The notes: generated by a model from the letters alone, not told the origin. Shown: positions 2,847 to 54,404, counted from the stretch's first letter. The stretch: 64,000 bases of DNA from Eutreptiella sp. 'Long Island Sound 2002' (GCA_964036045.1 OZ038379.1:44206001-44270000); one strand, 5' to 3'. Program-made: numbers and translations.

Positions 2847-2881
<35 letters not shown>

Positions 2882-5800
2882 GTGTATGGGTCGGAGGCTG
2901 GGTGGTGGGGGTGTGTGTTGTGCAGGGCTCGATGTGTCGATGGTTGGAATGTTGGGTGTGTGCATGTGTTTGTGTGTGTGTGTGTGTGTTTGTGTGTGAG
3001 CAGGCGGCTACCTGTGGCTAAAAGAATCCTCCAGCACCATGTAAACTGGTGCTTGCAAGACACGTAGTATGTCCTTCATCTCCCTCGTTGGTTCGCCATG
3101 GGAATGGACGGGACTCAGTGACCGATGCCCACCCCCCCCCCCGAGATACTTTGATCTTCATTCCCATGGATGATGATGACGAACCGGCCTCTGTCCATGA
3201 CTTAGCGAGGTCGGTGGAGTCGCATATGTCCATAGTGACCATACGAACGATGAGGACACAGGCTTCACAGTGTATAACGCCTTGAACTGCAGCTAATGGC
3301 ATTGGAAGACCCTAGCCGACTAGACACCACCCACTTGGACAAGTCTCAACAAGCAGAAAGCGACGCCCACCTCACAGTGTTGTATGTTGAACGTAATTGA
3401 CCCTAACCACACCTATACCCACTTGGGTTTTTCAACCTAAGGCCCAAGCAAAGCCCTACCAGGAGTGACCGAGTGGGGCCAGCACGCAGTGTAGCATGGG
3501 AAGGGAGTGACCACTCACTGGCATGTACGCCCACCCCAGTAGAGTCCTAAGCGCCCGCAATTGTAGCGGCCACATGCAGTAGAACTACTCATTTGAACCA
3601 CACTCATACTATGTTGGCGCCGAGCTCCAGCCAAATTAAAAGAAGGTGATGACGGCCGTGGGGCAAGCGCGCCTAGCGCGTAATGCGGACGCTGCAATGT
3701 GACCATATTGAAGCCCTAACCCTGGTTCCCCCGGCCACTAGTCGAGCGCCCCTGCCACGCGGAGTGTGGATGTAGACCAAGGCCGACGTCCGGAACTCCT
3801 CTCTGTTGGACCAAGACAAGAGAGGGTGCACAAATAGGCTAAGTGTGTAGTGTGGCTCACTGCACGCAGCCGTGAGCAAAGGGACACACAACCACCGACC
3901 CGCAGGACGCGTTGGCGGGATGCCTGCCCGGGACTCCACAAACAACAAACAGAGAGGTACACTTGGAGAGCGGACACGAGAAGCGCGGACAGAGGACACA
4001 CAGTGGAGGCCCCACCGCAGGCTCACTGCTCAAATGCATGCTTTCACTGCCTACTCGCAGATATGTGCACCATTGCATGCACCCACGTGACCCCTTGTTT
4101 TTGAAGCTTGCTTGCAGTGCCTCACATTCTCACTTGGAAACTCTATCAGGTGCAGCATATGACCCTACAAGATCCCCCCTTTTCCACATTGTAGTACGAC
4201 CGAGAGGTGCACCTCGCCCCTTGGGGGGCACTGCGCCTACCATGCGGCGACCCTCTCTTGGCTTAGCGCGCCTGATGTGCGGAGGGGAGTGCCCCTCGAG
4301 CATGATAGGTTGCCTCACGAGAGCTAGCCTAGTTCCCTCACATCCCACTCCCCTTCCACCTCGGTGTAAGCGACATGCTGGATTCTACGGCTTTGCCTAG
4401 ATTCTCCTGTTTCGCCTGCTACGCAGCCCACCTCAACTGCCAAGCTGAAGCGCTACGCGGAGGGCTGGGCTTGTCACAAAGCCAGCAATGCCCGGCACAA
4501 GACCGAATATTGAGAGGGGCACGCCTCCCTGGCCCACCCACAATACACATTGGCCACCTATGACGGTAGACTTTGATGCACCTAGTCAACGGCGTGGGGC
4601 GTTGCCCTCATCTTTGTGGACCCAACACAAAGCAGTGAAACAAGGATAGCTTGGGGGCTCCTTTGGTACGACCTACCAAGGTACAGGAACGGGGAGTAAA
4701 GATATGAGGATAGGCTAGACAAGGAGACACAGGGCAGAGGGGAGAAGGGTGTGAGAGGCCGATGGGCACTGCCCCCGAGCATAGGAGAAGGATGCAAGGG
4801 AAGGGCAAGGGTAAGTGGCAAGAGGCCAATAGACGCTGCCAGCTGCAGACAGCAATACACCTAGGCGTCTTGATCTCCGTGTAGAAGCGTTTGCATGTGT
4901 GGATTCGTGTTCCAAAAAAAACTCTGGATACAGAGTATGTGGGGGATGAAGGACGGGGGTATGGGGTCGGTGATCCGTGACCCATGATGCAAACAAGAGG
5001 AGGGGGGTTTCTGGATGACTGATCCGTGGACTACCTGCTGCACTAAGTGGTATTAGGTGCACAACTATTTTTTCGAAGTAAGTCCTCACCGGGCCATTGC
5101 AGTGTTCAAGTAAGGGTGTGTGAGGGTATCCCTCTCTTCAATTTTTTGTTTTCACAAGGAGAAGTGCAAGGATGAGAACAAGGACAAGCGCAAGACCAAA
5201 CTAGAGTATAGATCAAACAACTTGCAAGTTTGTGGGTATGTGTTACAAGTGTGACCGTGCAGCTAGTTCCGTGTTTGTGTGGATGTGTGTGTGTGTGTGT
5301 GTGTGTGTGTCTATTAAAGGGCGGGGGGGTTTGTGTGTGGTTGGGAAGGGGGCCCAATCGGTTGCTATGGTGTTTGTGTGTGTGTGTGTGTGTTTTTTTG
5401 TCTGCTTGTGTGTGTGTGTGTGTGTGTGTGTGTATGGGTTGGAGGTTGGGTGGTGGGGCTGTGTGTTGTGCACGGCTTAATGTGTTGGTGGTTGGATTGT
5501 GGGGTGAGCGCATGCATATGTTTTTGTGTGTCCGTTTGTGTGTTTGTGTGTGTGTGTGTGTGTTCGTGTGAGCAGGTGGCTACCCGTGCCTCAACGACAC
5601 CTCAAGCAAGATGTAAACTGGTGCTTCCAATACACGTTATGCCTCCTTCCTCTCCCTCGCTAGTTGGCCATTGGGAGTGACGGGAGCTAGTGACTAATGC
5701 CCCCCGATACTTTGACCTTGATTCCCATGGATGATGACGACCAACCGGCCTCGGTCCATGACTCACCGAGGTCGCTGGAGTTGCAGACGTCCCTAGTGAC

Positions 5801-11566: not shown

Positions 11567-12357
11567 GAGGCCAACAAACAGCTGTACGCAGGGGGACTCT
11601 TGCGAACTCACCACTTGAAAAAGGGCAACGCCATTCTCCAACGCCTCCGGAACGGCGACCTCATGGCAGGCCCCGATGGGGTCATTCAGTCTCGTGACCG
11701 GGAAAAGTCCGGGGACGAAGGCCGCAAGCGACGCCAGTCCCCCTCCATGTCTCCACCACGGGCGTCTCGCCGGTCGGAGGAGGACTGCGGCGAGGAGGCG
11801 CGCACCCCTCCCCGGAGGAGCAGCCTTACCGGGGAGGCTCGCGGCATACTCCCTAGTGTGCGGGGGGCCCGCGGGACGGTCGATACGATTACCACCCGCC
11901 GGCACAGGGCGAGCACAATTGCCAACCGCCGCAATGGCTCCCTCGGGAAGACGGATGGGGGCCGGAACATCGGTCATACCAATCCCACGGGGGCTATGGG
12001 GAGCGTCTTTCTTACCCTCGCCCGGAGTCCTATCCGATGGCCCAGGCGCACCAGACTCCTATGGCGAGCCCCCCGCCGGCTGCTTCTTGGGGACCACCAC
12101 CCATGGACCCCCGCTATTCTGGGGACGGCCGGTTGTCCCCCTACGGGGTGACCATGCCCCCGCAGGGGACGAGCATCCAGCCGACTCCGTGCTGGCACCA
12201 ACCGTACGTGCCGATGCCCCCGGCCGCGGACGCGGCAGCGAGTCCCTCGGGATACTCGGGGCCCTGGTACGGGGAAGCGGTGCAAGCGGCCGTTGCCGCC
12301 CCCCCGGCGGCCCCGGTGGCCCCGGTGGCAACCCCCGTTTGGGGGCCCAGCCCTTGA
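11567..12357 (+). pseudogene. Probable ORF1 (gag-like) remnant of the LINE, Arg/Ser- and Pro-rich
   Basis: An open frame runs from the very junction (11552..12151) and overlaps a Pro-rich frame (12037..12357), upstream of the APE. No diagnostic motif was found. Confidence 0.4.
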
Positions 12358-13029
12358 GGGGCACCTCGGATGTTACAGAACTTCCCGCGCCCATCACTGT
12401 GGGGTGAGAGGGCGGGGATGTCCTCTCCCCGGGTGCCGCGGCTCACGGCCAACTCACGCGTCTGGCCCGCGCCTCCGTGTGCCAGGGACGTCCCGTGGCC
12501 CAGTGGGGGATAGTGTTCGGTGTGTCCGGCGCTCGACACGGCGTACGTGACATAGCTGCAGCACTGGAGAACCTGCCGGGTCTCCATCCCGCGTCGGGGC
12601 ATGTATTCCTTTTTCAGGGCGACTGGCGCTTGCCCGCCATTTTGCAACAATGGGCAGCCCACATGGCCATATACCAGGTCTCGGGCGGCCACTCCATACA
12701 TTTGTACAACAGGGGGGGGGGGGGGGGCGTTACTCACCTGCCCGGGGCGGAGACCTCCGTGACGCGGGTGCCGCGGTCCGCCTTCAGTCGTGGGCCCGTG
12801 ATCCTCAAGGCTGCGTCAAACAGCTCCACCTCCTACGTTGCGGCTAACATCGACGCCCGGGCGCTAGGACGGTAGACGCTCCACGGTGCTGGAGCTCCCT
12901 TCAAGGCCCGACAGGCCGTCCTCCGTCGGCTGGAGAGCGCGGTGGACCAGAGAGGCCTGGGGACACCCGGCCCGCCTGCCGCCGAAACGTCCAACGGCCC
13001 CCGGGGGGGACGGAGGGGTTCCGGGCGGT

Positions 13030-13690
13030 TACCCTAAACCTCCGCCGGGGACTCACCGGCAAGGTGCAGGCCTTGGGATCATGTCTACGTGGCTGGGGCT
13101 ACCCAGACGTGGTGGGAGTGCAGGAGGTTGGCAAGCTACCTACCCACATGGTGGTCCATGCCATGTACTGGGCCACTTTCACCCAGGCGGCGCATCCGGC
13201 GGCCGGGGTAGGGGTACTGGTGCGTTGCCACCCCACGTTTCTGGAAGTGGGCAGACACATCCACTCTAGTGGGCGAGGCATAGCCCTGGAATACCGGAGC
13301 CGCGGTGGGCACGTCCTGGCCGTGGTGGTTTTTTTCCCAGTGGACCAGGACGTGGACTTATTGCGTAGCCTTCTCGCATGGGTCCTGGGTGTCATGGCTC
13401 CCCGTCGTCGGATGTAAACCTTGATGTTGGGGGACCTCAACGCTAACCCGGGGTGGGCAACAGGGTCCCGGCTGGCCCCGGCTGCCCTTTGCATCCTGTG
13501 GGGGGATTTCCTGCAGAACGCCGGGCTCGCCCGCTGCGTTCCCGCCATGGAGGTGCCCACGTGGACCAACGGGCGTGGGTGCGTGGGGGTCATAGACCAC
13601 GTTCTGCACGGACCCGTCCCAAAGGAAGGACACCTGTGGGTGGTCGAGGCCTCACCCTTCCCCTCGGACCATAGCCCGGTGGTGGGGGAC
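13030..13690 (+). pseudogene. AP-endonuclease (APE/EEP) domain of LINE ORF2
   Basis: Motifs VTLNLRRGL, DVVGVQE, LGDLNA, IDHVL and SDHSPV appear in the canonical order, with one in-frame stop at 13415-13417. Confidence 0.9.
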
Positions 13691-14499
13691 GCTCGGGACG
13701 TCCTTGACCCGGAAGACAGGCCCCGGGTGCTCCTGCGCGCCCGGCACTTTCAGGTCCGGGACCCGGGCATCACGGGGGTCTACCATGCGGCCTTAGCAGC
13801 AGCCCGTCAGGAGCGGGGTGCGCGGCTGGGGCACTTGGCGGGTCTGTACGCTTACTTGGTGGCCTCGACCATCCAGGGGCCGGAGAGTGCCCACGGTCCC
13901 CCCCGAGAATTCAGGGAGCTCCCCGGGCGCGTGGACCAGGTCCATCGACAGCTCCGGGCACACGCTAAGAGATGTCCCCGATGATGGGAGTCTTTGGACA
14001 CCCTCAAAGAGCGGCTTGATCTGCGCAAGGACCTGGCAGAGGCTTGGGAAGTGGGGAACTTGCAATGGTACCTCGCCCACGTCCCGGAGGTGGCCCCCTT
14101 CGCCCGGCCCTGCCCGGGGGCCTTCCGGTGCCTGTACGGGACGGCCCGCACGCCGCGGGTCCAAGCGCGGTTTTCTGCCCACCCGGACGTGGCTCCACGT
14201 ACCAGGGCCAAGGTGGCCTCGGACCAAGTCCGGCAACGGCACCGGAAGACGCTAAGGGAGTTGACGCCGGCAGACGTTAGGAGCATCACAGGGTGGGTCA
14301 CACCGCCACAGCCGTTGGGCTTGCCCACGGCGACAACCCCGCATCTGCGCCGCATTCTCTAGCGCAGTGGCAACACGGCGCCGGCTTGGGACCGGCTGCA
14401 GTATTGGATGTTGCGAGAAATGGACGACGACGGCCTCGCCATCGTATGCGAGGTCGTCAACCGCTACATGCGGGGGTAACGCCTGGAGGCCCTGGGGCA

Positions 14500-15300
14500 A
14501 GGGAACCTCCACCTCCTCCCGAAGAAGCCTCTGCATGGTATTGGGGCCAATGACCGCCCACTCACTAACCTTGTTCTCCTGCGTAAGGTTGTGGGCCTGG
14601 TGGTGAAGGAGGAGGAACAGCCCTAGCTTCGGGAGCACGGCTTCCTGCCCCCCAACCAGCTTGCCTTGTGGCCAGGTACGTCCGTGTGGGACTTCCTCAG
14701 AGTACTACATGATTATTTTTGGCACCGGTGGCCCTCGGGGGGCGAGGCCTGGCCCATACTTGACGACGTCCGGCACGCCTTCGGTTTCCCGGACCACGTG
14801 ACTCGGGACTCGGTGCACCGGGTGGTGGGCTACGGTCCGGACTCGTGTCGCCTGCACCGTTCTCTGGTTGAGGACATGCGCCTCGACATGGGCGGCACGG
14901 ACGATGTCGACCACGCCGAGGGGTGGTTTGATGCGGGGTCTGGGCAGGGATGTCCTCTCTCCCCGTTGGACTACGCGCCCATGGGGGAGGTACGGGCGAG
15001 GATGGTGTCCAAGGCCTACCCCGGAGTGCTCACCCCGGCCGGCCTACTGCACAGCTTGGCCTGGGCCGACGACACGGTCTGGTTGCGGGGCTCCTCGGAG
15101 GACGCGTCTGCCATCGCTAGGGCCCTCCCCGCCGTGGAGGACGCCGTGGCCTTGGGGTCCGACGTGTCTAAGATGCACGTGCCGCGGACCTGGTTGGAGG
15201 AGCAGCGCGTACGGTAGGGGGTGCCTTCGATCTAGATGAATGGGGTCCGGTTACCAGTACCGTCGGAGCCGGAGTACATCCGCTCCCTAGGGCGGGACGC
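14500..15300 (+). pseudogene. Non-LTR reverse transcriptase domain
   Basis: Motifs LLPKKP..NDRPLT, LDDVRHAF, GQGCPLSP, WADD (15062-15073), SDVSKM and YIRSLG. The frame is interrupted by stops and frameshifts. Confidence 0.9.
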
Positions 15301-16029
15301 CCTCCCACGTACCTACCACAAGGAGGACTTTTGGAAACTTATGACGGCGGCACGCTGTGCGTCCGCGGTGATCCCCATCAAGTCCTTACGGTCGCAGTAC
15401 CCCCCCGCCATGTATAACCCAAAGGCTGGTGGCATGGCTCGGTTTCAAGCCGGGGTTCGGACCCCCCCTGTCAGGGTGTGGCATCTCGCGGACCTCCCCG
15501 CCGCTTCTGCCCTGCGGGCGGTCGTGGGGGAGAACCTACCGGCGCACCGCCTGCTCGGGCCAGTGCAGGCGGGTCTCTCGGGCATATTGCCCATGGGGCC
15601 CGACGTGTTGACAACATTCGTGCTCAGCTACGCCCGCCAGTTGAACCACCCCAACCCCCTCACCCGTGCCACCGCCACATGTGCGCCCTCGGGCGGTTTA
15701 CCCCGGAAATGCCGTGTGTACTCAGGGGTTGACGGACTGCGACTACCACCCCACGGACCACGATCGTTTCCTTCGGTATACTTGGCTCATGGAAATCCGG
15801 GTTTGGGCTGTCCCGGAGAGCCATTCCGTGGAGGTATCCAAACACCCCGTGGGTACGGCGAGCACCGCCAGCGAGGCAGGTGATGCCCATGCGGTCCTGG
15901 CGGCCGGCTACAGGGACTGGTCTAGCACCCGAAGGGCGCGGTGGCCATCGCGCTTTTGCGGGCCGGAAACTCTCCCCCTGTGGCCCCGGCACGTGCGGTG
16001 GGCCCGGGAGCTACACCCTGAGGGAATTA

Positions 16030-16550
16030 CCCTGCGGGACATACCGGACGAGGTGGTTTTCGTACAGGACGCCGCTTGGTACCCCAAACACACGGCCGGT
16101 GGAGGTCTGGTGGTGGCGGATCCAGTGACAGGGTGGAACCAGACGTACCGGCTGCCCATCCCAATTCCCGTGGATGGGTCTTACCAGGCGGAGCTGTACG
16201 TGGGCTGGGAGGTGCTGCGGGCGCGCGGGGCCCACCGCGTGGTTTGGGGCACCCGGGGCCCACAGTGGTCCTTCTATGAAAGCAAAGGGTACATCGATGC
16301 CGTCCAGTCCCGGAACCCGGGGTCCTCTCCGCTCTCGGACGACCTAATACGGGCTTGCCGGGGGCTACTAGCCGAGGGGGTTTGTGCCCCACAGCACTTG
16401 TATTCTCACCGCGTCGGCACCTTTCTGGATTCCCTGTTGGATACGGCCGACGTGGAAGTAAAGAGGCAGGCCGCTAGGGCCCGGCCACAGGTGGGCTGGG
16501 TCCGGGGGCTCCAGACGTCCCGGGTCTGTTTCACCCACAATGACGTGTAG
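16030..16550 (+). pseudogene. RNase H-like domain of LINE ORF2
   Basis: VQDAA / YQAEL / FYESKGY / HLYSH / DTAD fits the D-E-D(E)-H-D spacing of RNase H, within ORF 15666..16550. Confidence 0.7.
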
Positions 16551-17678
16551 GTGCACAACCTGGACCACCTGGTCAAAACCGCGGCACGCCGCCTATGGGG
16601 TCTCCACATGGAAGCCCCGGAACAAGTGGTGCGCAAGTCCCTGGCGGTTTATCACGCCATCGCCATCACGGAGCGCGGCTTGGTTCAGTGGGGGGCCCAC
16701 CTCCGCACGATGGCGCGTCGTGAGGGATTGGGGCATGCCGGGGACGACCGCCCCTGCCCCGCTTGCCTCAAGGGGGTGGGGACACGTCATTGGGTCTCTA
16801 CTTGCCCGTGGCAGCACTTATTTCGGTTGGCCGTTCACACCCAACTGCACATGCGCTTGGACACTTTGTGTGCGCGTTGGAAGCGGCGCGCGGTATCCCC
16901 TTGGGGGGTCATAGTTCTGTATGGGCCGGATGCCTTTGCCCTCAGTGTGGGCTTGCCGGACGACGACCACCCCCATCCCGGGCCGGGGGTCCCTACTTTA
17001 TACCTGTATCCTTCCAGGGACTGGGAGCCCGAGGATCTGCAGTACCTGTATGACCGGGGGCTGGTGGTGGGTGCCGCACAGCGGTTGCTGGCCACCATCA
17101 TAAATTTTTGCGACGCTTTGGACCGTAAGCGGGAGATGCCCATCATCCCGGCGGCCCGGGAGGTCCACTACCGGGACACCTGGGGGCAAACGTGGGATCT
17201 GTCGGTCCGGGTCCCGGAGAGGTTTGACCCGACCGCCTACGAAAGTGGGGCCCGGCCGGCCATGGCAGGGGTCTGGCCCGGGGCGAGCCTGCTATGGCCC
17301 GTATGTGAGCGATGTGAGCTCTCCGCCATCATGCCCCCGGGGCACCAGCAGCCCCCGGACTGGGGCAGCTCTCAGCGTGTATTTTGCTACTCCGACCGTC
17401 CTCTGCCCAGGACCCTGGGCCGTTGGCCCGGTGCTGTCCGGGGGGCACATGTGGTTGTCATAGACGGGCCGGGGGGTCTCCCCGCACGGCGTTTGGTCTG
17501 GCTCATCGGCTACGGGCCGCCCCACCGCTACGTGGGGCTGTACGAGACGAGAGAACCCCATGACCGGCGGCTGGTATGTCGGTTGCGGGATATGCTGTTA
17601 GCCACGCTGCGCATGGCCGGGTACCAGCCGCGGGTCAGCTACCAGCTGTTGGGGCTTGCCCTTCGATCCCCTCGATAA
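16551..17678 (+). pseudogene. LINE ORF2 C-terminus: CCHC finger plus ~290-aa unknown extension
   Basis: This is in frame with the previous ORF across a single TAG. CPACLKGVGTRHWVSTC matches C-X2-C-X7-H-X4-C. Confidence 0.75.
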
Positions 17679-18190
17679 GCTCCGTGACATGTGCCGTACC
17701 AGGTACGTTTCCGTGGGCGGGGCCGGAGGGGTGTAGAGGATAGCTCCGCGCACGCACACCTTCGGTAGAAGTACCGTGCGCCGGGGGGGGCGAGGTCAGG
17801 CCACGGACCAAGCCCCCATGACCCGCCGGCCATACGCCGCCTAGTCGGTAGTCACTGGTGGGCTAAGGGCCCACACCCGTGAGACTGCGTCCCCCTTCCC
17901 GTGGGGGGGGGGTGGACCGTGCCGGAAGTGGAGCCGGCGCTCCGCCTCGCCCCCCAATCCGTGCCCCTGGGGGGATCCAGCAACGTGTAGGGCGGGAGTG
18001 CATGCGTGTTGTGCGGGCCAGGGGACAATGGGAGGAGACGAAGAGGAGAGCCGCCGCCATGATGCTTTGCCGGACGGGTTGGGACGGGAACCCCCCTCTC
18101 AGTCGCGGCCAGACCGATGAGGGCTGGCGGGCACCATGGGGATGTGCCGCGGGTGCGCCCTACCGGGGGACTACATCTCCTCCTCCTCCT

Positions 18191-31322: not shown

Positions 31323-33791
31323 GGCACACCAGGAAGGGGAAGGACAAGGGCAAGGGGAGGGCAAGGGACACCAAGGGGCACTCAGGCAATAGGGCACGGA
31401 GGGGCCCCAAGTGAGGGCAGGCACCCATAGGGACAGGGCGCCGGAAGAGACACCACATGGGGGCAGGAAACCACCTAAGAACCAGGAAGGGGCAGGAGCG
31501 GGGACCAAGGCGTGGAGGAAAAGGGCACCACGGCAAACGCCACGACCCACACCCAGGAAGGGCATACCACGACGGGGGGACCAGCGCCGCCCCATCCCCA
31601 CCGAACGCCCCACGACTCCCGGGGGCGCACCCCCCAACACGCACCGCCGAAGCAAGCATTGGACGCCGTACGGATCACACCAGTGCACACCCAGCAGCCA
31701 CCGGAAACCACACGGGGAACGGAGGGCACACCTACACGGGGAGAACGGGCCACACCCACAGAGGAAGCCGCAGGGAACGCCGCCGCACGGCGCACCACCA
31801 TGCCCTCACCGCCAGGCGACGACCCCGGCTGCCACAAGGGCCACCTCACAGGCACCGGAAGAGGACAAAGGCACGGCCACAGCGACCAGGGCTAGGGACC
31901 GAAACCCCCAGAGGACACGGGACCAAGGCACAGGCCCCCAGGGAGGGCAACCCGACGGACGCCTACCCGACCCACCAGCCCGAGCGACACGCCCAGGGCC
32001 CCACAGCACGGACCCAGCGAGACACCCACACCTAACCGCACCCCCCAGCCACCAGCCAGCCACACTCCGGCCCGCACTCCGCACCACGACACAGGCTAGG
32101 CTGACCTCCACTGACCCACCACGGCACAACGCGAGACCACGGCACACTGCACCACAGCACGCCACAGTGCAACGCGCCAAAGCACGAGGCGACACGATGC
32201 GGCACAGAGCGGCACAACACGGCACAACTGACCCTACCCAGAAGGACTAACTGAAGCAAGCCACCGCACACCATGGAAGGCGCCGCACCAGCACGCCACA
32301 CACCGGCACCGCAGGCCACACACGGGGCCACCGCGCGCCCAGCAACAACGGTGGCGGACCACCCAGAAGGTGAAAACCGGCACCGCAGAGGGGAAAGGAC
32401 ACGAACAACCCCAGCCCCCTAACCCAGAGCCACGCGCAGCCGCCTGGCGCAGCCGCCCAGCTGGCAGAGCCAGGACCTAGCCCGGCAAGAAGGGGTGCCG
32501 AGTCCAACGTGTACATAGCCCACCCGACCCATGGGGCTGGAACACGGCTAAACAGCAGGCAACCGCAAACAGTTGCCCGGAAGACCACACTGAATGCAGG
32601 TAAGTGCGTGCGCCAGCCCAGGGAAGGCAGAGGGAGGAACAGGCAGCCCCCCCCCGAAAAAAAAAAAACCAGAGGGGGGAGCGCGAAAACAGCCCACAGC
32701 CACCAAACCGCCCGCCAACACCACCAGAGGCGGCCAAACCCCCCACCCAGAAGGCACCGAAGACAGGACCCCCAAAGAGGCACAGGGGGACCACCAAGCC
32801 AAAACCGGCAACACCAAGCCAGGAACAGCAGCCCACCGGGAAAAGGGACACCGAAACATGCAGACACACACCACGGAAAAAAAAAATAAGCCAGCAGCCC
32901 AGCCCGAAAGAAAGGGGATGGGGGGACAGGGACCACAAGGCCCGGGACAGGGACACCCAGCAACCAACACCACAAAGCCAACAAAAAAAAAAGCGCAAAA
33001 AACAAACCCCGACAACCCAGCCAAGAAGGGCGGGGCATAGCTGAGACCCGGGCCCAGCACGCACGCCCACACCGCACACCGGAACCGGAAACGGCAGGGG
33101 GCAAGTGGAGCGGGCACGAAACCACACACGTCCCATAAGCAGGCCGAAACCTAAGCCCAACCACGAACACCACAAACAGCCGGCACTAGAGGGACAACAC
33201 CACAAACCGTGCCCAAACACACCCACCCAAGACCCCAGCCAGGACTGGCGGGGTTAACAAAACCCACACCCAACCGCAAACCGGACCCAAACACAAACGC
33301 CGCACAACAGTAGGAAACCCAGTGCCCACAGCCCGGGCACTGAGGCAGCCCGTGCCATGCAGGTGACCCGGCCAAACGAGATCCGGAGACCGGGGGTAAG
33401 GCTGCATCCTAAGGCCTGCGCTGCTTTGGGAATCGAGGCGGAGCGTGCGACACCCAAGCGTCTTGGAACCCTAGTACCAAGAACATGCAAGCATGCCTTG
33501 GGAACGGAATACGCCAGGAAGTCCGGTGAACCCCTAGGGTTCCGCTCAAAGGAGGGGACGTGCGCAAGCGCGGGGGCACACCCTCCAGGCGAGACAAGCA
33601 CGTCACGCCGGCAGCGATCAGCCCTCCCGGTGTTGCCCGGGGCCGCTTTTTTGGGGGCCAACAGTCAGGTCTAGCTGGATGTAAGCCGCCTCCCCTCTTC
33701 ACGCGCAGAGCCTCTTGCTGTTCGTCACAGGGGCGACGCCAGGGGGAACCAAGGGGCGCCTCTCCACGACAGAGTGCACCTACCTACCTAC
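31323..33791 (+). other. Insert Y: ~2 kb T-depleted low-complexity sequence, ~460-bp complex segment and (ACCT)4 tail
   Basis: It sits exactly between X and X'. ACCTACCTACCTACCT lies at 33778-33793. Confidence 0.6.
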
Positions 33792-36323
33792 CTCCGATAG
33801 CGACGCACCAGCCGCAAAACGCGTCTGCTCAGATTTCGAAGTGCAGCTGTTTCTAAGCGACGCCTCCGGACTGTCAGATTCATGACTGTCTTTCTGTTTG
33901 CTGTCAGGTGAACACTTGAATTGTACCCCATTCTCGGATCCATAGATTTGCGATGTTTAGAGCCACAGGAAACAGATGTGCATGGCCGCTGATATAATGT
34001 GCAGCCAATTCTGACGTGTATTTTTGAATATATGTTTAACGATTGGACTGTTTGTGCCCGCCGTTGCACCTCAGGCTGCATTGTGTGGTCTGAGTCCTGG
34101 CAGGACTGATTGCCCTGAAACTTGATTGCGTAACCTTGGAGAGAAGTACATGTCGCAACATTGGGGTATTACAGCTTGTTTTTTTGCAAGTGTGCAAGGG
34201 GATAGAGGTGAAGTTCTCATTGCTTTTTTATAAGCAGAGAAATGGAAATGCAATATAGCGAAGAAGCCAGTTTTTATAAATGATAAGGTAGAAAACATTT
34301 TATCTGAATGGCACCATGGTTTCGATAAATAGTGGACAAAAACATTCATTGCAGAAACCATTTTGTCCGCATGGCACACTGGTTTGGATAAATAGTGGAC
34401 AACAACATTTGCGGTTAAACAGCCAAACAGCCAAACAGCCAAACAGAAAAAAAAACTTGAAGGCACAACATTCTGGTCACACATTTCTAAAACCTTTAAT
34501 AGTTCACCTTGAGAAGAAAAGCTCAAGACCTGTTTGCTGTACTCGGGATGTACCCGGGGAACAAAGAGACACCAGGGACATGCGTTTTAACCTGATTGTA
34601 GAATCTACTCTGACACATTCCCAAAACTGTTTGTAAAGTGTCTTTAATGCATGTAGGTTCCATACGCAGGGTACCTGGCAGGTGTGTCTGGAGTGAGGGC
34701 AATAAAAGATTTTGTGAAACTGTTTTGAGAATGTTTTTGAGACATGGGGCGCTGGAGCGAAGACATTGAAAACGTTTGTAAACCCTAGGGGTGTTTCTGA
34801 AAGGTAGACCATACAAAGATCAAAGACATGCTGTACAATCTGTACATGAGGGCGTAAAGGGACCAATGCTGTCAAAAACCAATGGCCGGTAGTGTACAAT
34901 GCCGGCAAACACTAGGTTTTTTGGTCCCTGACCAATTTTTTCCTATGGGGAACAATTGGGTCTTGGGGTGAAGTGACCCCCGGAAGAAATTGGTCGGGCG
35001 GCATTATTTGGTCAGCTTACCATAACTTAATCATTGTTATCACTCTTTTGAACTTTAAAGTACACTTTCTCAAAGTGGCTAGGGTTATAACCCTAGCCCC
35101 CCATGAAGTTCACCACTACCTCTCAACTGAGCGGAGGTATCTTCCTTCATGGAGGTAATACCGAAATAAAGTAGGCACTTCTTGCCTAAGGCCTTGTACG
35201 TTAAGCCTAGTGGCCCCCCACCTCAAGACCCCTATACTCAACTGATTCTACCACTTGTTGTGGTTCTACCTTTTAACTGATTCTTAATTCAGTTGCTTGG
35301 CCATGCTGGTTAAGCCATATCCTGTGTCTGGCCCACCTCCTTTGCCCCAGATTCCTAACCAACTCCATTTTATCCAAGAGAGTGCACATGAAGTGCTTGG
35401 TGCTATCTTGGAGGCCTGAGTCATGCCAGTTTTAACATAAAATCATCTATTTTGTTTATAAACCATTGGAGCTTTGTATTTAGATCTATTATTGTCTATC
35501 TGCAGCCCGTCTTTGTTACACGTGTTTTGATTGTTGAAGAAGCTATCCTGATTTGATTGATCCGGTGCCTGGACTTCCTCTGCATTACCTTTGTGTGGAC
35601 TTCATTTTGAGCTGTGGAAAATCAGCAAGGGTTTCGTAAAACAAATACAAGGAACAATCACAAGTGTGAGCAAACCGGAAACCTTTTCTTGAAGCAGAGG
35701 AAGGCCCTAGAAGACTAAAGCAGAACACGAAGAACATGAAGAAAAACGTGTTTCCTAAACTGTGAAGATGTCTATCACACTCAGTGCCAAAACAGTGCTG
35801 ATCACAAGCACCAGGTCCAAGACTGATGATGTGAGAGGACGACCTACATCTACAAGTGGTGTACCCGTTGATGGTTGTCCTCTCGGAGAACTTGCAGTAA
35901 CAAGAGGGGCGGAAGAAATCACAGAGATATATACAAAGGAGTCCGCCCGAGCGCAAGCGCTGAGGCGCCCGGCTTAACGCGGGCAAACCTCAGGCGCCTC
36001 GAAGGCAAGAACCCTGTGGCAGCCGCCTTAGCTTCCATCGTGTCCCTCGATGCACCCGTCCGAAACTACGCCTACCCCAGGAATCGAAATGGCTAATGCC
36101 AGGGTCAAGGCCTGGAGAAGAGCTGCAAGGAAAGGAGAGGGGAAGGGTGCGCCTTTGGGAACGATGTTCGGAGCCTCTGGGGGCGAGGAGACGTTCGAAA
36201 TACCTCACGGCGAAATGGACTGGTCGTCGTCGGCCCAATCATCAGACGGGAACCCAAGTGGTTGTCTGGAGAACCTACGCCTCCGGAGGAACCTTAGGAG
36301 TATGAATGGCTGAAGCCTGGCCC
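33792..36323 (+). repeat. Segmental direct repeat, copy X'
   Basis: See copy X. The pogo right-TIR copy is at 35009-35022, and the copy runs continuously into gag. Confidence 0.95.
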
Positions 36324-39582: not shown

Positions 39583-39619
39583 AGTGTAATGACCGATTTT
39601 AGTGTGACACAAAGCAATT

Positions 39620-40640
39620 TGAGTCTGCTCGGCTCTGCAAAGCCCAGGGTCCAGTGCGATGCACATTGATTGTATCTAGGAAGACGCTATGCCTGTTGGA
39701 ACTTCCGTTACTTCACTCCCGATGACTGGTGCAACCTTGCCAGCTGATGTCCAAGAAAACCCCCCCCACCAAGACACCCCAAAAATTACCATTTTCTTTG
39801 TGCTCGGCTCTGCAGAGCCCGGGTCCAGCAGAATGACCAATTTCAGCCGTCAAGTTACGAATTTGAGAGTATTGGGCTCTCCAAAGCCCAGGATTCCATG
39901 GCATGCCCATTCACTGGATCGACAAATTCGCTGTGCCTGTTGGAACCTCCCCAAAATCACTCCTGATGACTGATGCAACCTTGCCTGATGACGTCCAAGG
40001 ACCCCCCACCCCCAAGAAACCCCCTAATTCGCCATTGTTGTCATGCTGGGCTATGTAGAGCCCACATCCAGCACATTGACCAATTTCAGCCGTGAAGTTA
40101 CCAATTGGAGAGTACTGCGCCCTGCAGAGCCCAGGATCCCATGGGATGCCAATTGACGGGATCTACAGAGACGCCGTGCTTGTTGCACTGTTGGAACCTC
40201 CGCAGCTTCACTCGTGATGACTGGCGCGACCTTCCCTGATGATGGCCAAGGACCGCCCCCCCTGAGGACGCCCCCAAAATTCACCATTTTGGTCATGCTG
40301 GGCTCTGCACAGCCAAGTGAAGCACATTGACCAATTTTAGCCGTCATAGTACCATCTTGTGAGTTCCGGGCTCTGCAGAGCCCAGGATCTCCTGGGATGC
40401 CAATTGACTGGATCTACAAAGAAGCTGTGCCTATTGAAACTCCCGCGACTTTTTTGATGTCCACCCGCACAACCTTGCCTCATGATGTCCCAGCATCCCC
40501 CCACCCCGACAACCCCCTCATTTGTCGATTTCGTCATGCTGGGCTTTGCAGACCTCACATGATGCACATTGACCCAGCTTAGCCGTCATATTACCAATTT
40601 AATAGTACTGGGCTCTGCAGCCCAGGATTCCAAGGAATGC
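39620..40640. repeat. ~245-bp tandem repeat (about 4 units), each unit with two GGGCTCTGCAGAGCCC-type palindromes
   Basis: Anchors at 39802, 40045, 40297 and 40538. The perfect palindrome is at 40368-40383. Confidence 0.85.
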
Positions 40641-40849
40641 AAATTTACGCTGTGCCACATCGCTGTGACTTGGTGGATCGCTGAATCCTGTTGCAACGTG
40701 CCCTCCTCTATGCCTCCTGTGCACACAGGCACTAAGACTGAAGTGGCTGGCATCTCTAAGAAGTTTAGGACCGTTTAGCGAGTTTTGGTGCATGGCAAGG
40801 GAGCTGGGAGTACAGCGAGGGCACGCCATGGCCACCCCTCCAAGCGCCG

Positions 40850-45400: not shown

Positions 45401-47746
45401 ATAGAGGCCATCCGCCTATTTGCTTATTTCATCCCTGGCTGTAAAGCGGTCGGTACCCCCCCAACGGCATAGCTTATGTGGCCAATGACTCCACTTTCGG
45501 CCACTACCGATTATGTCCCTGAGTTGAAAAGGTTTGGGGACCTTCATGAGCATGTGGCCCGATTTGTACCTTGTGGGCCACCGGTGATATTGTCCGCCGC
45601 TCTGAACTGTTGGGTACCGCCTAGATAGTAGGGCCTGTGTAGGCAATTTGCCCAATTTTGGACCACTTCTGATTTTGTGCCCCGCTGTGAAGCGTAGAAG
45701 ACCCCGAAGAAGGCAAGGGTTGTGTTGCGATAATGCCCACTTGTTGGCCATTGTGGATGGTCATTTTGGCTGCCACTCGTTGCGCACTGCTAATTGTCTC
45801 TCTAGTTGTGAAGCGCTGCGGACCCTCGGATCACATGAGGTATGTACCCAATGTGTTGCGTTGTGGACCGCTACTAATATTTTTTTCGGCCATTGCGGAC
45901 CCTCCAAATGGCCTTGGTTATGTCGCCAATTGCCCTATTGACTGCTTTGCTTGGAAGTGTAGGGAACCCCCAACCAGCCAAGGATATGTAGCCAACTTGC
46001 CAACCTTTGGGCCAATTATCCCTTTCTCAAGCATTATGAAGCGCTGGAACCCTTCAGACAGCCGGGCTGTTTCGCCCAACTCCCCAGGTGTGGGCTGTAG
46101 CCGAGTTTTCTCGCCGCTGCGATCCCTAGGGCTCACATCCGCGGTGGGCACCGGTTGTGTTCCCGATTTACCCACTTCAAAGTCCCTTTTCGATTATTCT
46201 CCAGTGTGATGCATAAACGACCAAGCCCCACAACAGAAGGGGTTTTGTGCCCGATGTGGCTACTTGTGGGCCACTGCTGTTTTCATCTTATGCCTGTTTG
46301 GGTTGGGGACCCCTCAAGTGTGTCGCATTATTATGCCAAATTTGCCTATGTGTGGGCAACCACTTATTTTGTGACTGGCTCTAAGGTGTTCGGAACCCCG
46401 CGGAAGGTACACGTCATGTAGCCAATCAGCCCACTTCTAGGCCACTACTGAATATGTCCGTCGCTTAGAAAGGTTGGGAACCCTACAGACAGCAGGGGTC
46501 TTGTGGCCCATTTGCCACCTTGCGGGCCACTGATGATGTTGTCCCATGCTCTGAAGTGTTTGGTACTGCCTAGATGGCGAGGCGTGTGTGGCCAATCTGG
46601 CTCCTCATGGGCCATATGTGATTTTCGCTCCCGCGTTGAAGCGTAGAAGAAGGCAAGGGCAGTTTTGCCAGTGAGCCCCGTTGTTGGCCACTGTTAATCG
46701 TCGCTTTTGCAGCCACTCGTTTGCCACGGCTAATCGTCTGTGTGGTTGTGAAGTGGTGCCGGCCCTTGGGTTGCACGAGTCATGTATCCAATGTGCTGAA
46801 TTCTGGACCGGTGCTCATTTTCTCTCCGGTGATGGAGTATTAGGCACCCTTCAAATGGCCGGTGTTATGTAGCCAATTGCCCGCTTGCGGGTGACTTCTA
46901 ATTTTCTCCCGTGCTGTGAAGCGTGCGGAATCCGCCGTGCGTCCCGGGGTATTTAGCCAAGTTGCCCACACTCAGGCCACTTGTGAATTTTTCCACCCTC
47001 GAAATGGCAGGGGTGTGTTGCCCATTTGCCGAATTGAAGGCCGCAACCAAGTTTGTTCCCCGATCCCCCGCTAAGGGATCAGCCCCCCCCTCCCGGTTAT
47101 GTTCCCAATTTGCCCGCTTGTGGGTCAATTTGGATTGGTCCTCCTTGCTTATACATACACACACACACCCATTACGCAGGGGTTACGTACCCATTGTGCC
47201 GAGTTATGGGCCTCTGCTCAAATTACCTTCTGCCTGTAAGGGTTGGTGACCCCCCAAATGGCATGGATCGTAGAAGCAATTTGCCTATGTGCACGCCATT
47301 GCTTTTTTCCTCCTTGTTTGTGAAGCGTTTGGTACCCCTCCTACCGCACGGGTCATGTAGCCAATGAGCATGCTTTTCCGCCACTTCTGAATACGTCACT
47401 CAGGTAGAAATTTTGGGGACCCTACAGACAGCATGGGCCGTGTGGCCCATTTGCCACCTTCTGGGCCACCAGTGATGTTGTCCCCCCCTCTACAATGCTG
47501 GGTACCGCCGGGACGGCAAGCGTTGTGTGGCCAATTTGCCCACTTGTGAGCCACTTTTGATTTTCTCCCCCGCTTTGAAGCCTAAAACAGCCCGAAGAAA
47601 GCAAGGGTTGTGTTGCCAGTCTACCCATTTGTTGGCCACTGTTGATTACCTTTGTTGTTGCCAGTTGTTGCCCACTGCTAATTGACTCTTTGGTTGCGAA
47701 GTGCTACGGACCCTTGGGTCGCATAAGTGATGTACCCAAGGTCTTA

Positions 47747-49450: not shown

Positions 49451-50619
49451 TAAGAAGCTGCTGACTTGTGGGCCGCTGCTGATTTTCTCTCCAGCAATTG
49501 AGCATTAGGGACCCCCCACATGGCTTGGGTGATGTAATTAACTGCCTTTCCTACTTTGAAGGCTAGGGAAGCGTGTGACCGACCCAAGATATGTGGCCAT
49601 TTTGCCCGGTTTCAGGCCAATTATGAATTGGTCCCGCTTTCTGAAGCTCCAGGGACTCTTCCGTCGGCAGGATGTGTCCCCCACTTGAGGGTCGGTTTTG
49701 ATTTGTCCACCACTGTGATGCATACACGACTGCTCCAGCCCTCCCCAAAAGAGGGGCTTGTGTACTCGTTGTTTTGACTTGTGGGCGACAGCTATATTCA
49801 TCTTCTGCTTGTAAGTGTTTCAGAGCCTCCAAATGGCGCGCATTGTGCAGCCAATTTGCCTATTTGCGGCCCCCTTTTTTTTTGTCACCGGAAGCGGTTG
49901 GTAGCCCCCCGGACGGCACGGGTCATGTAGCCAACAGGCCCATTCCGGGGCCACTACTGATCATGTCCCTCACTTAAAAAGGTTGGTGACCCTCCAGATA
50001 GCGTGGGTCCTGCGGCCCATTTGCCACCTTGTGGGCCGCCGCTGATGTTGTCACGTCCCCTGAAAGGTTTGGCACCACCTACACGGCAAGGCTTGTGGAG
50101 CCCATTTGTCCACAAGTGGGCCAAATCTGATTTCGCCCCCCCGTCTCGAGGCGTAAAAGAAGGCAACAGTTGTGTTGCCAATCAGCCCACTTGTTGGCCA
50201 CCGTTGACTGTCTCTTTGGGTGCCCTTCGTTGACCACTGCTAATGTCCTCTCTAGTTGTGACGCCCTCCGGGCCTTTCGACTGCACAAGTCATGCAACAA
50301 TGTGCTGAAATGTGGACTGCTGCTGATTTTCTCTCCGGTGATCCAGCATTAGGGACCCTCCAAGTGGTTGGGCTTATGTAGCCACTTGCCCTCTTGTGGC
50401 GGACTTCTGATATTCTCCTGGAGGATGAAGTGTGTTGAACCCCACGGCACGCCCGGGATGTGTAGGCAACACACCAGCTTCTGAGCAAAGTATGAATTTG
50501 TCATGCATTCCGAAGCACCGCAAACTCTTCAAATAGCATGGCTGTGTCCCCCATTTGCCCACTTGTGCGCCGCAGACAATTTTTCTCCCCCCTTTGAAGC
50601 ACAGGGGTGAGCCCCATAA

Positions 50620-51540: not shown

Positions 51541-51817
51541 GGACCGTTAATGTTCCAGATCGGCCTACTGGTGGGTAACGTTTGATGTTTCCATGGCTCT
51601 AATGCATACACGACCCCCCCTGCCCCGATCGGCAGGGGTTCTGTACCCATTGTGCCGACTTTTGAGCCCTTGCCAGTTTTATCTCTTGCTTGTAAGTGTT
51701 TCCGAGCCTCCGCATGGCACGGATAATAGCGCCAATTTCCTTATTGGCGGGCAACTGGCTTATTTTGTCCCCGGCTTTGAAGCGTCTAGTACACCCCGAG
51801 CAGCACGGGTCATGTAG

Positions 51818-53407
51818 TGTATACCCTATGGGGTACTGGACTGATCTCTTTTGCGGCGAGCAATTTGCAAAGAACAACACCAACTCCGTTGATCACTCTT
51901 TGAAATTGTCGAAATCCTTCATGATCAGTCCATACAGAGAACCGTGAAATATAAACAGAAATTTCTCATATAAAACAGAACTCTTGAGAAGCGTAAAATC
52001 CTTTATTTCTGCACGCGCGCGCCGCACCCTAAGCTACAGGATCGCGATCTGGCTTCGGGCAGCCCCTGCTGGGCATAACCCGTCACACCCCCCGCTGAGC
52101 CGTTGCCGCAGTCACTAGGCCACCTGCAAGGGCTGACACACACCCAGGGGTATGCACAGCCATTACTAGCCATTACTGTACAGAAAAAATTGCTGAAATG
52201 GACTGAGATATTATACACTGTCCTAACCCCAATACCTGAAATCCTGAACTGAGGTCCCTCTACGTTCCTTCGGGTATCCTACACACTATCCTGAGTGGGG
52301 GGGTCACTGCCACCTAAAAACCCAGCTGACTATGGGACAAAATACCTGAGAAAGCACTAAAGGTTTTCAAACAGAAAATCACCTAAGCCAAATGCTGCTC
52401 TAAACTCCTGGCCTGAAACTCAGAGGGGCAGTTTTCCAAACTGATGTTCAAAAGAGTTTCACTGATTGTGTTCTACTTACTGCCCATGCCACCAGTCTGA
52501 TTCAAAAACATTTCCTGCACCCAAAAAAAAAACCCTGCTCAGAAGTTTGAAAAACAATGGACACACAGGCACAAAAGCAGCAACAACAGGGCACAAAAAA
52601 AGACAGTGAATACACACTGTGCTGCCCCCCTGAGCTTTAGGACAGGAGTTTAGAGCAGGATTTTGCTTAGGTGATTTTCTGTTTGAAAACTTTTAGTGCT
52701 TTCTCAGGAACGCTTCTCCATAGTCAGCTGGGTTTTCAGGTGGCAGTGAAACCCCCCTTCAGGACAGTGTAGGGTACCCGAAAAACAGTAGAGGGACCTT
52801 AGTTCAGGACTTCAGGTCCTGAGGGTAGGATATTGTACATTATCTCAGTCCATTTCCGCAATTTTGTTTGTACAGTAATCGCTGTGCATACCCCTGGGTG
52901 TGTGTCAGCCCTTGCAGGTGGCCTAGTGGCTGCGGCAAGGGCTTGGGGGGGGGTGTGACGGGTTGTGCCCAGCAGGGGGCTGCCCGCAGCCAGATCGCGA
53001 TCCTGTAGCTTAAGATGCGTCGCGCGCGTGCAGAAATAAAGGATTTTACGCTTCTGAAGAGTTCTGTTTTATATTAAAATTTATGTTTGCAATTCAGGGT
53101 TCTCTGCATGGACTGATCATGAAGGATTTCGACAATTTTGTATACCCTATGGGGTACTGGACTGATCTCTTTTGCGGCGAGCAATTTGCAAAGAACAACA
53201 TCAACTCTGTTGATCACTCTTTGAAATTGTCGAAATCCTTCATGATCAGTCCATACAGAGAACCCTGAATTACAAACAGAAATTTTAATATAAAACAGAA
53301 CTCTTCAGAAGCGTAAAATCCTTTATTTCTGCACGCGCGCGACGCATCCTAAGCTACAGGATCGCGATCTGGCTGCGGGCAGCCCCTGCTGGGCATAACC
53401 CGTCACA
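51818..53407 (+). mobile_element. TRIM-like non-autonomous element: 270/269-bp TG..CA direct terminal repeats, TGTAG TSD, fold-back interior
   Basis: LTR1 is 51818-52087 and LTR2 is 53139-53407. TGTAG lies at 51813-51817 and 53408-53412. The inverted arms are 51903-52431 and 52622-53138. Confidence 0.9.
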
Positions 53408-54404
53408 TGTAGCCGATCAACCCACTTCTGGGCCACTACTGAGTATGTCCCTCATTTAGAAAGGTTGGGGACCCTGCGGACAACAGGGGTCATGTGGGCC
53501 GAAGTGCTTCACAATGCAAGAGACAATTAGCAGTGCCGTACACCTGGCAGACTAGCAGCACAATTCTTGCCTTCCTCGGGGTCATCCACGCTACAAACCT
53601 AAGCACAAAATCAAAAGTGACCCACAACTGGCGATTTGGCCACTGCCGTCTGGGTGATACCCAGCACTTAAAAGCACGATTGAACATCACCAGTGTCCGA
53701 CAAGGCGGCAAATGGGCCCTCGGACCACATAGGTCATGCATTCAATGTTCCGAGTTGTGGACCGCTGCTTATTTCCTCTCCGGCAATCAATCATTAGGGA
53801 CCCTCCAAATGGCGGTGGTTATGTAGCCAATTTCTCTTTTGGCCACCGTTGATTATCTCCCTGACTGCCACTGCTTAGCCACTGCTTATTGTCTCTCTAA
53901 TGGTGATGCGCTTATTGCCTCTTTGGGTGTGAAGCGTTTTTTGCCCTTGAACTACATGAGGGATGTACGCAACATGCTGAATTGTGGATTGGTGCTGGTT
54001 TTCTGTTCGGCAATCAGCCATAAGGGAATGCTCCAAATGGTTTGCGGTATGTAGCCAATTGCCGTCTTGCCGGGGACTTCTGATTTTCTCCCTTGCTTTG
54101 AAGCGTGCGTAACACCCTGTAGGCCCGGGAGATGTACCCAATATGCCAGCTTTCGTTCCACTGATGAATTTGTCCGGCGATCTGAAGCACTGCGGAATCT
54201 TCAAAAAGCAGCGGTGTGTCTCCCATTTGCCCACCTATGGGCCGCAACCAAGTTTGTTCCCTGCTGTGAAGCATCGCATTTAGCCCCCAGGAACGAACCG
54301 TTTATGTTTCGATTTGCCCGTTGGTGCCTCACTTTTGGTTTGTCCATCACTCTAATGCGTACACGACCATCCCGAACAGCAGAAGTTATGTACCCATTGT
54401 GCCG

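Follow-up and report, generated by a model that had tools for sequence, protein, structure and literature searches.

An old fold-back insertion of a non-autonomous LTR element in Eutreptiella, probably a one-off product of aberrant reverse transcription

In DIRS elements, the terminal repeats are inverted or split; these elements rely on a tyrosine recombinase and lack a target site duplication (TSD). Mu killer of maize is an inverted-duplication derivative of a transposon that gives rise to a hairpin RNA. Among LTR elements, Tf1 and Tj1 are self-priming: the 5' end of their mRNA is complementary to their primer binding site (PBS) (PMC4600332). The strong-stop DNA of HIV-1 can fold back and prime itself in vitro, which results in dead-end products (PMC6088434). 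A literature search returned no account of fold-back derivatives among self-primed LTR elements, which is not proof that none exists. The copy described here, located at positions 51818-53407 of a 64,000-nt stretch of the genome of Eutreptiella sp. 'Long Island Sound 2002' (OZ038379.1:44206001-44270000 of GCA_964036045.1; hereafter the window), combined features that recall each of these systems. An original prediction made from the sequence described it as a "hairpin TRIM", an element with the layout a-b-B-loop-B'-b'-a-b in which a and b make up the terminal repeat, and this layout, together with its TGT..ACA ends and TGTAG TSD, was confirmed by a repeat search of the window, by alignments and by empty insertion sites.

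The direct repeats were located at 51818-52087 (LTR1, 270 nt) and 53139-53407 (LTR2, 269 nt), and both ended in TGT...ACA on both strands, as did the LTRs of all normal copies of the family. The two copies of the TSD, read directly, occupied 51813-51817 and 53408-53412. The inverted arms (51903-52431 and 52622-53138; 529 and 517 nt long) were separated by a 190-nt loop and formed collinear blocks of 84-93% complementarity, and the RNA of the fold-back region was predicted to fold into a stem of ~520 bp (-900 kcal/mol). Furthermore, b' (52976-53138) and the b part of LTR2 formed a 163-nt inverted pair of 98%, 85 nt apart, in the repeat search. Global alignments gave 96.3% identity between LTR1 and LTR2 (10 substitutions and 1 indel), 97.3% between b' and LTR2-b, 92.9% between b' and LTR1-b, and 86.7% between B and B' (83.7% when gaps were counted). 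These values reproduced the earlier hand counts of ~96% for LTR1/LTR2, ~96% for b'/LTR2 and ~87% for B/B'.

With respect to the window, the element is on the minus strand, on which LTR1 and the LTRs of normal copies read TGTGAC...TATACA; LTR1 is the 3' LTR and LTR2 is the 5' LTR on this strand, and the left TSD copy is downstream of the element. Three paralogs of the flanking repeat represented empty sites in which a single 5-bp target joined the left and the right flank (window about 49926-49930, C2:45123439-45123443 and C2:45096343-45096347). The flank alignments overlapped by exactly the 5-bp target at all three paralogs, and the predicted empty site was collinear with the paralog inside the window. 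Because the paralogous empty sites hold one TGTAG, the 1,590 bp entered as one insertion. The assignment to a non-autonomous, integrase-inserted element of the LTR type was supported by the direct LTRs, the TG...CA ends, the 5-bp TSD and the lack of recognisable coding capacity. The DNA that served as the target is a dispersed or local repeat with 70-86% identity among its copies (window about 46415-46509, 47187-47360 and 49761-50018; G000:C2:45.09-45.12 Mb). No further DNA of the family was found elsewhere in the 64-kb window. The window also contained a tandem repeat of 243-bp units at 39615-40645 (4.2 copies, 73% matches), a 6-kb block of 66-68% G+C at 12001-18000 (44-62% in the remainder), and a 2-kb stretch with a very strong AT skew (0.53) at 32001-34000.

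The parent family is abundant in the 2.28-Gb assembly, with about 800 candidates for the LTR at first look and about 650 for the segment that follows LTR1, and LTR matches occurred as pairs about 3.0-3.1 kb apart. Twelve family loci were read, and ten of these held LTR pairs: nine copies measured 3,186-3,355 bp, and the tenth (L070) measured 4,611 bp and carried an internal duplication. The paired LTRs differed by 0-3 mismatches in about 270 nt (99-100% identical, n=10), and the 5-bp TSDs were exact in seven of the ten copies and agreed at 4 of 5 bases in the other three. Every sampled normal copy had the order a-b-B-loop-about 2.2 kb-a-b, and none of them contained the inverted B'-b' arm. B and the loop are the ordinary interior of a young, abundant family, because all normal copies carry them collinearly. 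The loop (52432-52621, minus strand) is a natural interior segment, X. All normal copies have it next to Y, the 344-nt stretch that precedes the 3' LTR. The arm at 51903-52431 (arm D, minus strand) comprised Y, U3 and 11 nt from the start of the putative R; it was collinear with normal copies and equivalent to positions 2743-3264 of a normal copy. On the other hand, the arm at 52622-53138 (arm P, plus strand) was an extra inverted copy of Y, U3 and R1-11 in place of ~2.27 kb of interior. The window copy lacked positions 282-2549 of the normal element, including a conserved ORF of 150 aa.

The ORFs of the family lie on the minus strand in the orientation of the window. Among them, this ORF was located right after the PBS and was open in 8 of 9 normal copies; its true-strand element positions were about 297-748 in L061-L069 (e.g., L062:3062-3511:-). 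It may encode a Gag-like protein of a helper-dependent family. The ORF had no Pfam match and no usable ESM Atlas match, no recognisable gag or pol was detected by Pfam in three interior ORFs, and an Rfam search of the whole window gave no match. No helper with the same LTR was found. A 13.8-kb LTR-to-LTR interval on C12 (L071) was considered as a helper and rejected, as its ORFs had no RT or IN domains; the sole domain match in this interval was a weak RNase H on the opposite strand, which was probably contributed by a nested element. Rearranged copies were also observed. L064 (G000:C8:59145691-59150543) contained three tandem LTRs within a single TSD, CACGG, forming units of 3,329 bp and a shortened 1,796 bp that have the middle LTR in common. 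L070 (G000:C12:15711709-15716319) carried a second block of part-b, B and loop, and L072 (G000:C5:136312358-136313469) contained part-b, B and loop followed by a more diverged B fragment. The internal duplicates in L070 and L072 indicate that internal rearrangement occurs readily near the 3' end in this family.

The original prediction reported neither a PBS after LTR1 nor a polypurine tract (PPT) before LTR2. This is literally true on the plus strand, but both are present on the minus strand; they appeared to be lacking because the element had been read on the wrong strand. In normal copies, the 5' LTR was directly followed by AAATTGTCG(A)(A), with AAATTGTCG unchanged in 8 of the 10 copies and altered by one base in L063 and L065. 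The PBS is the reverse complement of an LTR site at 51903-51917 (minus strand), 96 nt from the LTR end, which reads TTCGACAATTT on the true strand and is extendable to 15 nt. A probe across the boundary of b' and LTR2 matched many family copies over the 9-11 nt before LTR2 (TTCGACAATTT), which is the reverse complement of 51903-51913. The PBS and the LTR were complementary over 9 nt, with an extension to 10-11 nt in a number of copies and to 15 nt in L075; by calculation, a 270-nt LTR should contain an exact 11-nt complement by chance about 6e-5 times. The L075 motif at the PBS position (L075:1561-1576; 15 nt complementary to the LTR with one mismatch, as against 9-11 nt in most copies) suggests that the ancestral complementarity was longer. 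The PPT of the window copy, GCGGGGGG (52088-52095, minus strand), was located directly upstream of the 3' LTR, and its G-run recurred in normal copies, 8 of 10 of which had GGCGGGGGG immediately before the TGTGAC of the 3' LTR, while the other two had the one-base variants GGCGGGAGG and TTGCGGGGGG. From this geometry we infer that, as in Tf1, the family's own RNA serves as the primer of reverse transcription, and that the LTR site at 51903-51917 is the start of R and acts as the self-primer.

Both junctions of the inverted arm were located at short homologies. On the true strand, the element has the order 5'LTR(LTR2)-PBS-rc(U3)-rc(Y)-X-Y-3'LTR(LTR1), in which rc denotes the reverse complement and rc(U3) and rc(Y) belong to the extra copy. 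Junction J2 (53128-53138, minus strand) is the PBS itself, AAATTGTCGAA on the true strand, and the 517-nt inverted arm here begins with these 11 nt; the complementarity to the LTR, 9-15 nt in normal copies, runs on for 517 nt. Junction J1 (52622-52628) lies in a 7-nt microhomology, CTGCCCC, which the normal interior has in common with the beginning of the inverted arm. Normal copies read CTGCCCC followed by AGAGGG, and the inverted source at J1 reads AAAA, CTGCCCC and then CCTGAG. Matches of normal copies to a J1 probe extended only up to 52628, and the inverted matches began at 52621/52622. In normal copies, CTGCCCC flanks X as an inverted repeat.

The ancestry of the two arms was analyzed by aligning both with 28 distinct normal copies, followed by tree reconstruction and an AU test. 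Arm P was placed inside a clade of 18 rows (support 92/97), whereas arm D was placed outside it, and forcing the arms together cost 23.7 log-likelihood units (AU p=0.021). Of the 74 columns in which the arms differed, 32 had both alleles segregating in normal copies, and these included a 9-nt indel as well as a series of linked subfamily markers; the remaining differing columns were private to one arm. Each arm showed 93.6-93.8% identity to its nearest normal copies, compared with 88.4% from arm to arm. The nearest relatives of arm D were normal copies (93.8%), and the best genome-wide match of arm P was at 94%. The excess divergence of B and B' is mostly due to two different parents, because the arms are not sisters and their differences segregate in normal copies. 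The claim that the fold-back is older than the insertion, and was hence inherited, was not sustained by these results. Arm P belonged to a subfamily other than that of arm D, and the arms appear to have differed largely from birth, the inverted one having apparently been copied from another family member. No pattern of an editing or deamination type was detected between the arms, as the private changes mixed transitions and transversions. An intramolecular snap-back, which would generate identical arms at birth, is disfavoured by the subfamily-diagnostic differences, although later ectopic gene conversion could mask such an origin.

LTR1 and LTR2 both contained a run of 4 C, whereas b' and 47 of 47 other LTRs contained 5 C. 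Because of this common 4-C run, LTR1 and LTR2 are the true pair of one replication event, and b' was derived from another template. LTR2-b was identical to the family majority everywhere except in the 4-C run and had no private change, whereas the b region contained nine private changes in LTR1 and five in b'. Thus, b' is closest to LTR2 because both are near the family majority. The claim that b' had been homogenised with the LTRs failed, since the 1-nt deletion common to the LTRs was absent from b' and LTR2-b merely equals the majority sequence. Gene conversion between b' and LTR2 was rejected on account of the five private changes in b' and its lack of that deletion. LTR1 carried nine private changes versus two in LTR2, an asymmetry (roughly p=0.07) that counts against the explanation favoured below. 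The LTR pair was 3.7% diverged versus ≤1.1% in sampled normal copies, and the window copy is older than these because of this divergence; later gene conversion at such an old copy is conceivable.

We consider it probable that the locus goes back to a single old insertion, and that the inserted element was a defective fold-back derivative of a ~3.35-kb non-autonomous family, formed as a one-off product of aberrant reverse transcription. As the PBS is the reverse complement of R1-11, a DNA 3' end that terminates in the PBS could anneal to R, the template being the 3' end of a co-packaged RNA or a plus-sense cDNA. One such DNA is plus-strand strong-stop DNA, for which this mis-annealing would take the place of the normal second strand transfer. 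Extension through U3 and the upstream 344 nt would then write these sequences in inverted orientation, and a second switch at CTGCCCC/GGGGCAG would return synthesis to the normal template at X. The resulting product would be 5'LTR-PBS-rc(U3)-rc(Y)-X-Y-3'LTR, with 2.27 kb of interior lost, and would have been integrated with a 5-bp duplication. In a mirror route, the minus strand would have switched onto another minus-strand cDNA at the 7-nt repeat, reached R1-11, which equals rc(PBS), and undergone a premature second transfer. Both routes would involve two template switches at the observed homologies and would provide two complete LTR ends for the integrase, and a second, different genome as the template would yield chimeric arms. 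The original prediction had offered, as an alternative, a persistent copy-back defective genome of an LTR element. The copy-back part of that proposal is close to the explanation favoured here: an inverted genome end replaces positions 282-2549, and the junctions fall at the PBS/R complement and at a 7-nt homology.

The same final sequence could have been generated at the DNA level, which we regard as unlikely overall, though it is the strongest of the alternatives. A second family member would have been nested in inverted orientation in a normal copy at TGTAG. Two deletions, each bounded by short direct repeats, would then have removed the remaining sequence: the first had its ends in the 11-15-nt PBS and in the PBS-like complement carried by the inverted LTR, the second in the 7-nt GGGGCAG repeats. 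Template switching at a replication fork (MMBIR/FoSTeS) could have had the same effect. Microhomology-mediated deletion predicts that both junctions lie in short homologies, as observed, a nested second insertion would naturally explain arms of different subfamilies, and nested or tandem rearranged family copies do exist (L064, L070 and L072). However, this route requires three rare events at one locus, which retained no trace of the U5, TSD or interior of a second element, and no other family copy was available in the 64-kb window as a local template. Moreover, the J2 junction was found again at a locus on C10 (L074; L074:1286-1639, G000:C10:10180031-10180384), so that the same chain of events would be needed twice. 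L074 is a 344-bp unit with its own perfect TSD, CATAG. In it, a full LTR is followed by 56 nt that extend the PBS into the reverse complement of U3, and the unit closes with the final 18 nt of the LTR. Judged from its sequence, L074 arose and was integrated independently, by the same mis-priming but with a different second switch. The LTR/PBS junction in its extended form occurred in three places only, namely the window, C10:10180298 and C3:14176674, in a genome-wide pattern search (30 nt, up to 3 mismatches; more decayed fold-backs could escape it). At the C3 locus (G000:C3:14176674-14176703), the LTR end was followed by the extended PBS complement with 3 mismatches in 30 nt, which is perhaps a third case of the mis-primed junction.

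A replicating "hairpin TRIM" lineage, with an inherited fold-back propagated by a snap-back or ICR-like step and a homogenised b', is very improbable. The higher divergence of B/B' (86.7%) relative to LTR1/LTR2 (96.3%) and the proximity of b' to LTR2 had pointed to it, and mobilisation is possible in principle, as neither LTR has been lost and the PBS and PPT are retained. On the other hand, no second copy of the fold-back layout was found in 2.28 Gb by junction probes, with the best 40 candidates per query scored, or by the pattern search of the whole genome (≤3 mismatches in 30 nt). Among the best 40 candidates, the J1 probe was spanned only by the window copy, and the 400-nt J2 probe was spanned in full by the window copy alone. 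The layout is single-copy, and the sampled relatives, which measure 3.2-3.35 kb apart from a rearranged copy of 4.6 kb, are ordinary in their interior, PBS and PPT. Copies that retain the layout with different TSDs, which the original prediction expected of a family, were not found, and this is the outcome that it had itself set against its proposal. The arms are not sister sequences and differ largely by alleles found segregating in normal copies, and the derived deletion common to the LTRs is absent from b'. An assembly artefact (a chimeric or fold-back long read, or the collapse of two inverted copies) is equally improbable, because although palindromic chimeras are a known artefact of long reads, fold-back artefacts have identical arms whereas those seen here match at 88% and differ in ancestry, the junctions are not arbitrary and fall on the PBS and a 7-nt homology, and the unit is bounded by a TSD that was confirmed by empty sites.

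Under the favoured explanation, an aberrant reverse-transcription product, no new replication strategy needs to be claimed, and the "hairpin TRIM" becomes a single defective derivative. The copy kept the LTRs, PBS and PPT, lost most of the interior together with the conserved ORF, and had no detected progeny; it is probably dead. With L074 as a second, independent case, it would provide a clean natural illustration that a primer site with self-complementarity can lead strand transfer astray and yield integrated fold-back copies. If transcribed, the hairpin locus would be a candidate source of dsRNA against a high-copy family. A more far-reaching idea, which we consider doubtful, is that self-priming LTR elements possess a built-in failure mode, in which mis-transfer of strong-stop DNA onto R, made possible by a PBS that equals the reverse complement of the R start, generates fold-back proviruses, and that the hairpin locus silences its own family in a manner similar to Mu killer. 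If this were true and the locus were transcribed from its intact 5' LTR, about 500 bp of dsRNA would be directed against the U3/PPT-proximal part of a family of ~800 copies.

Among the described systems, DIRS elements resemble the window copy in having an internal segment that is complementary to terminal-repeat sequence. In contrast to DIRS, the window copy has direct repeats, TG..CA ends and a 5-bp TSD, and the complementary region is absent from normal members of the family; the direct LTRs and the 5-bp TSD also argue against the DIRS-like or ICR-like replication step that had been suggested. The family is similar to TRIM and LARD elements in its short LTRs, its lack of recognisable gag/pol, the presence of a PBS and a PPT, and presumably its mobilisation in trans. 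The window copy, at 1.59 kb, is TRIM-sized, but its small size is the result of a one-off deletion-plus-inversion of a 3.35-kb family, the normal members of which exceed TRIMs in size and contain the conserved 150-aa ORF. Similar to Mu killer, it is a single rearranged copy of a multicopy transposon with a long inverted repeat, and its transcript, if produced, would fold into about 500 bp of dsRNA. In TAR-dependent self-priming of HIV-1 minus-strand strong-stop DNA, a 3' end likewise anneals off its proper acceptor and is extended into an inverted copy (PMC6088434). The HIV-1 products are dead ends formed in vitro, whereas the product in the window was apparently rescued by a second switch, completed with both LTR ends and integrated, and the complementarity used was the element's own PBS/R pair. 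The family as a whole resembles Tf1 and Tj1 of the Tf1/sushi group: its PBS after the 5' LTR is complementary to an LTR site, taken as the 5' end of the RNA, rather than to a tRNA, and it has TG..CA LTRs, a 5-bp TSD and a PPT that abuts the 3' LTR. The family differs from Tf1 and Tj1 in having no recognisable gag/pol (no Pfam match), and it would need a helper. These features add sequence-level support to the view that this protist genome hosts large families of Tf1-like self-priming, helper-dependent LTR elements.
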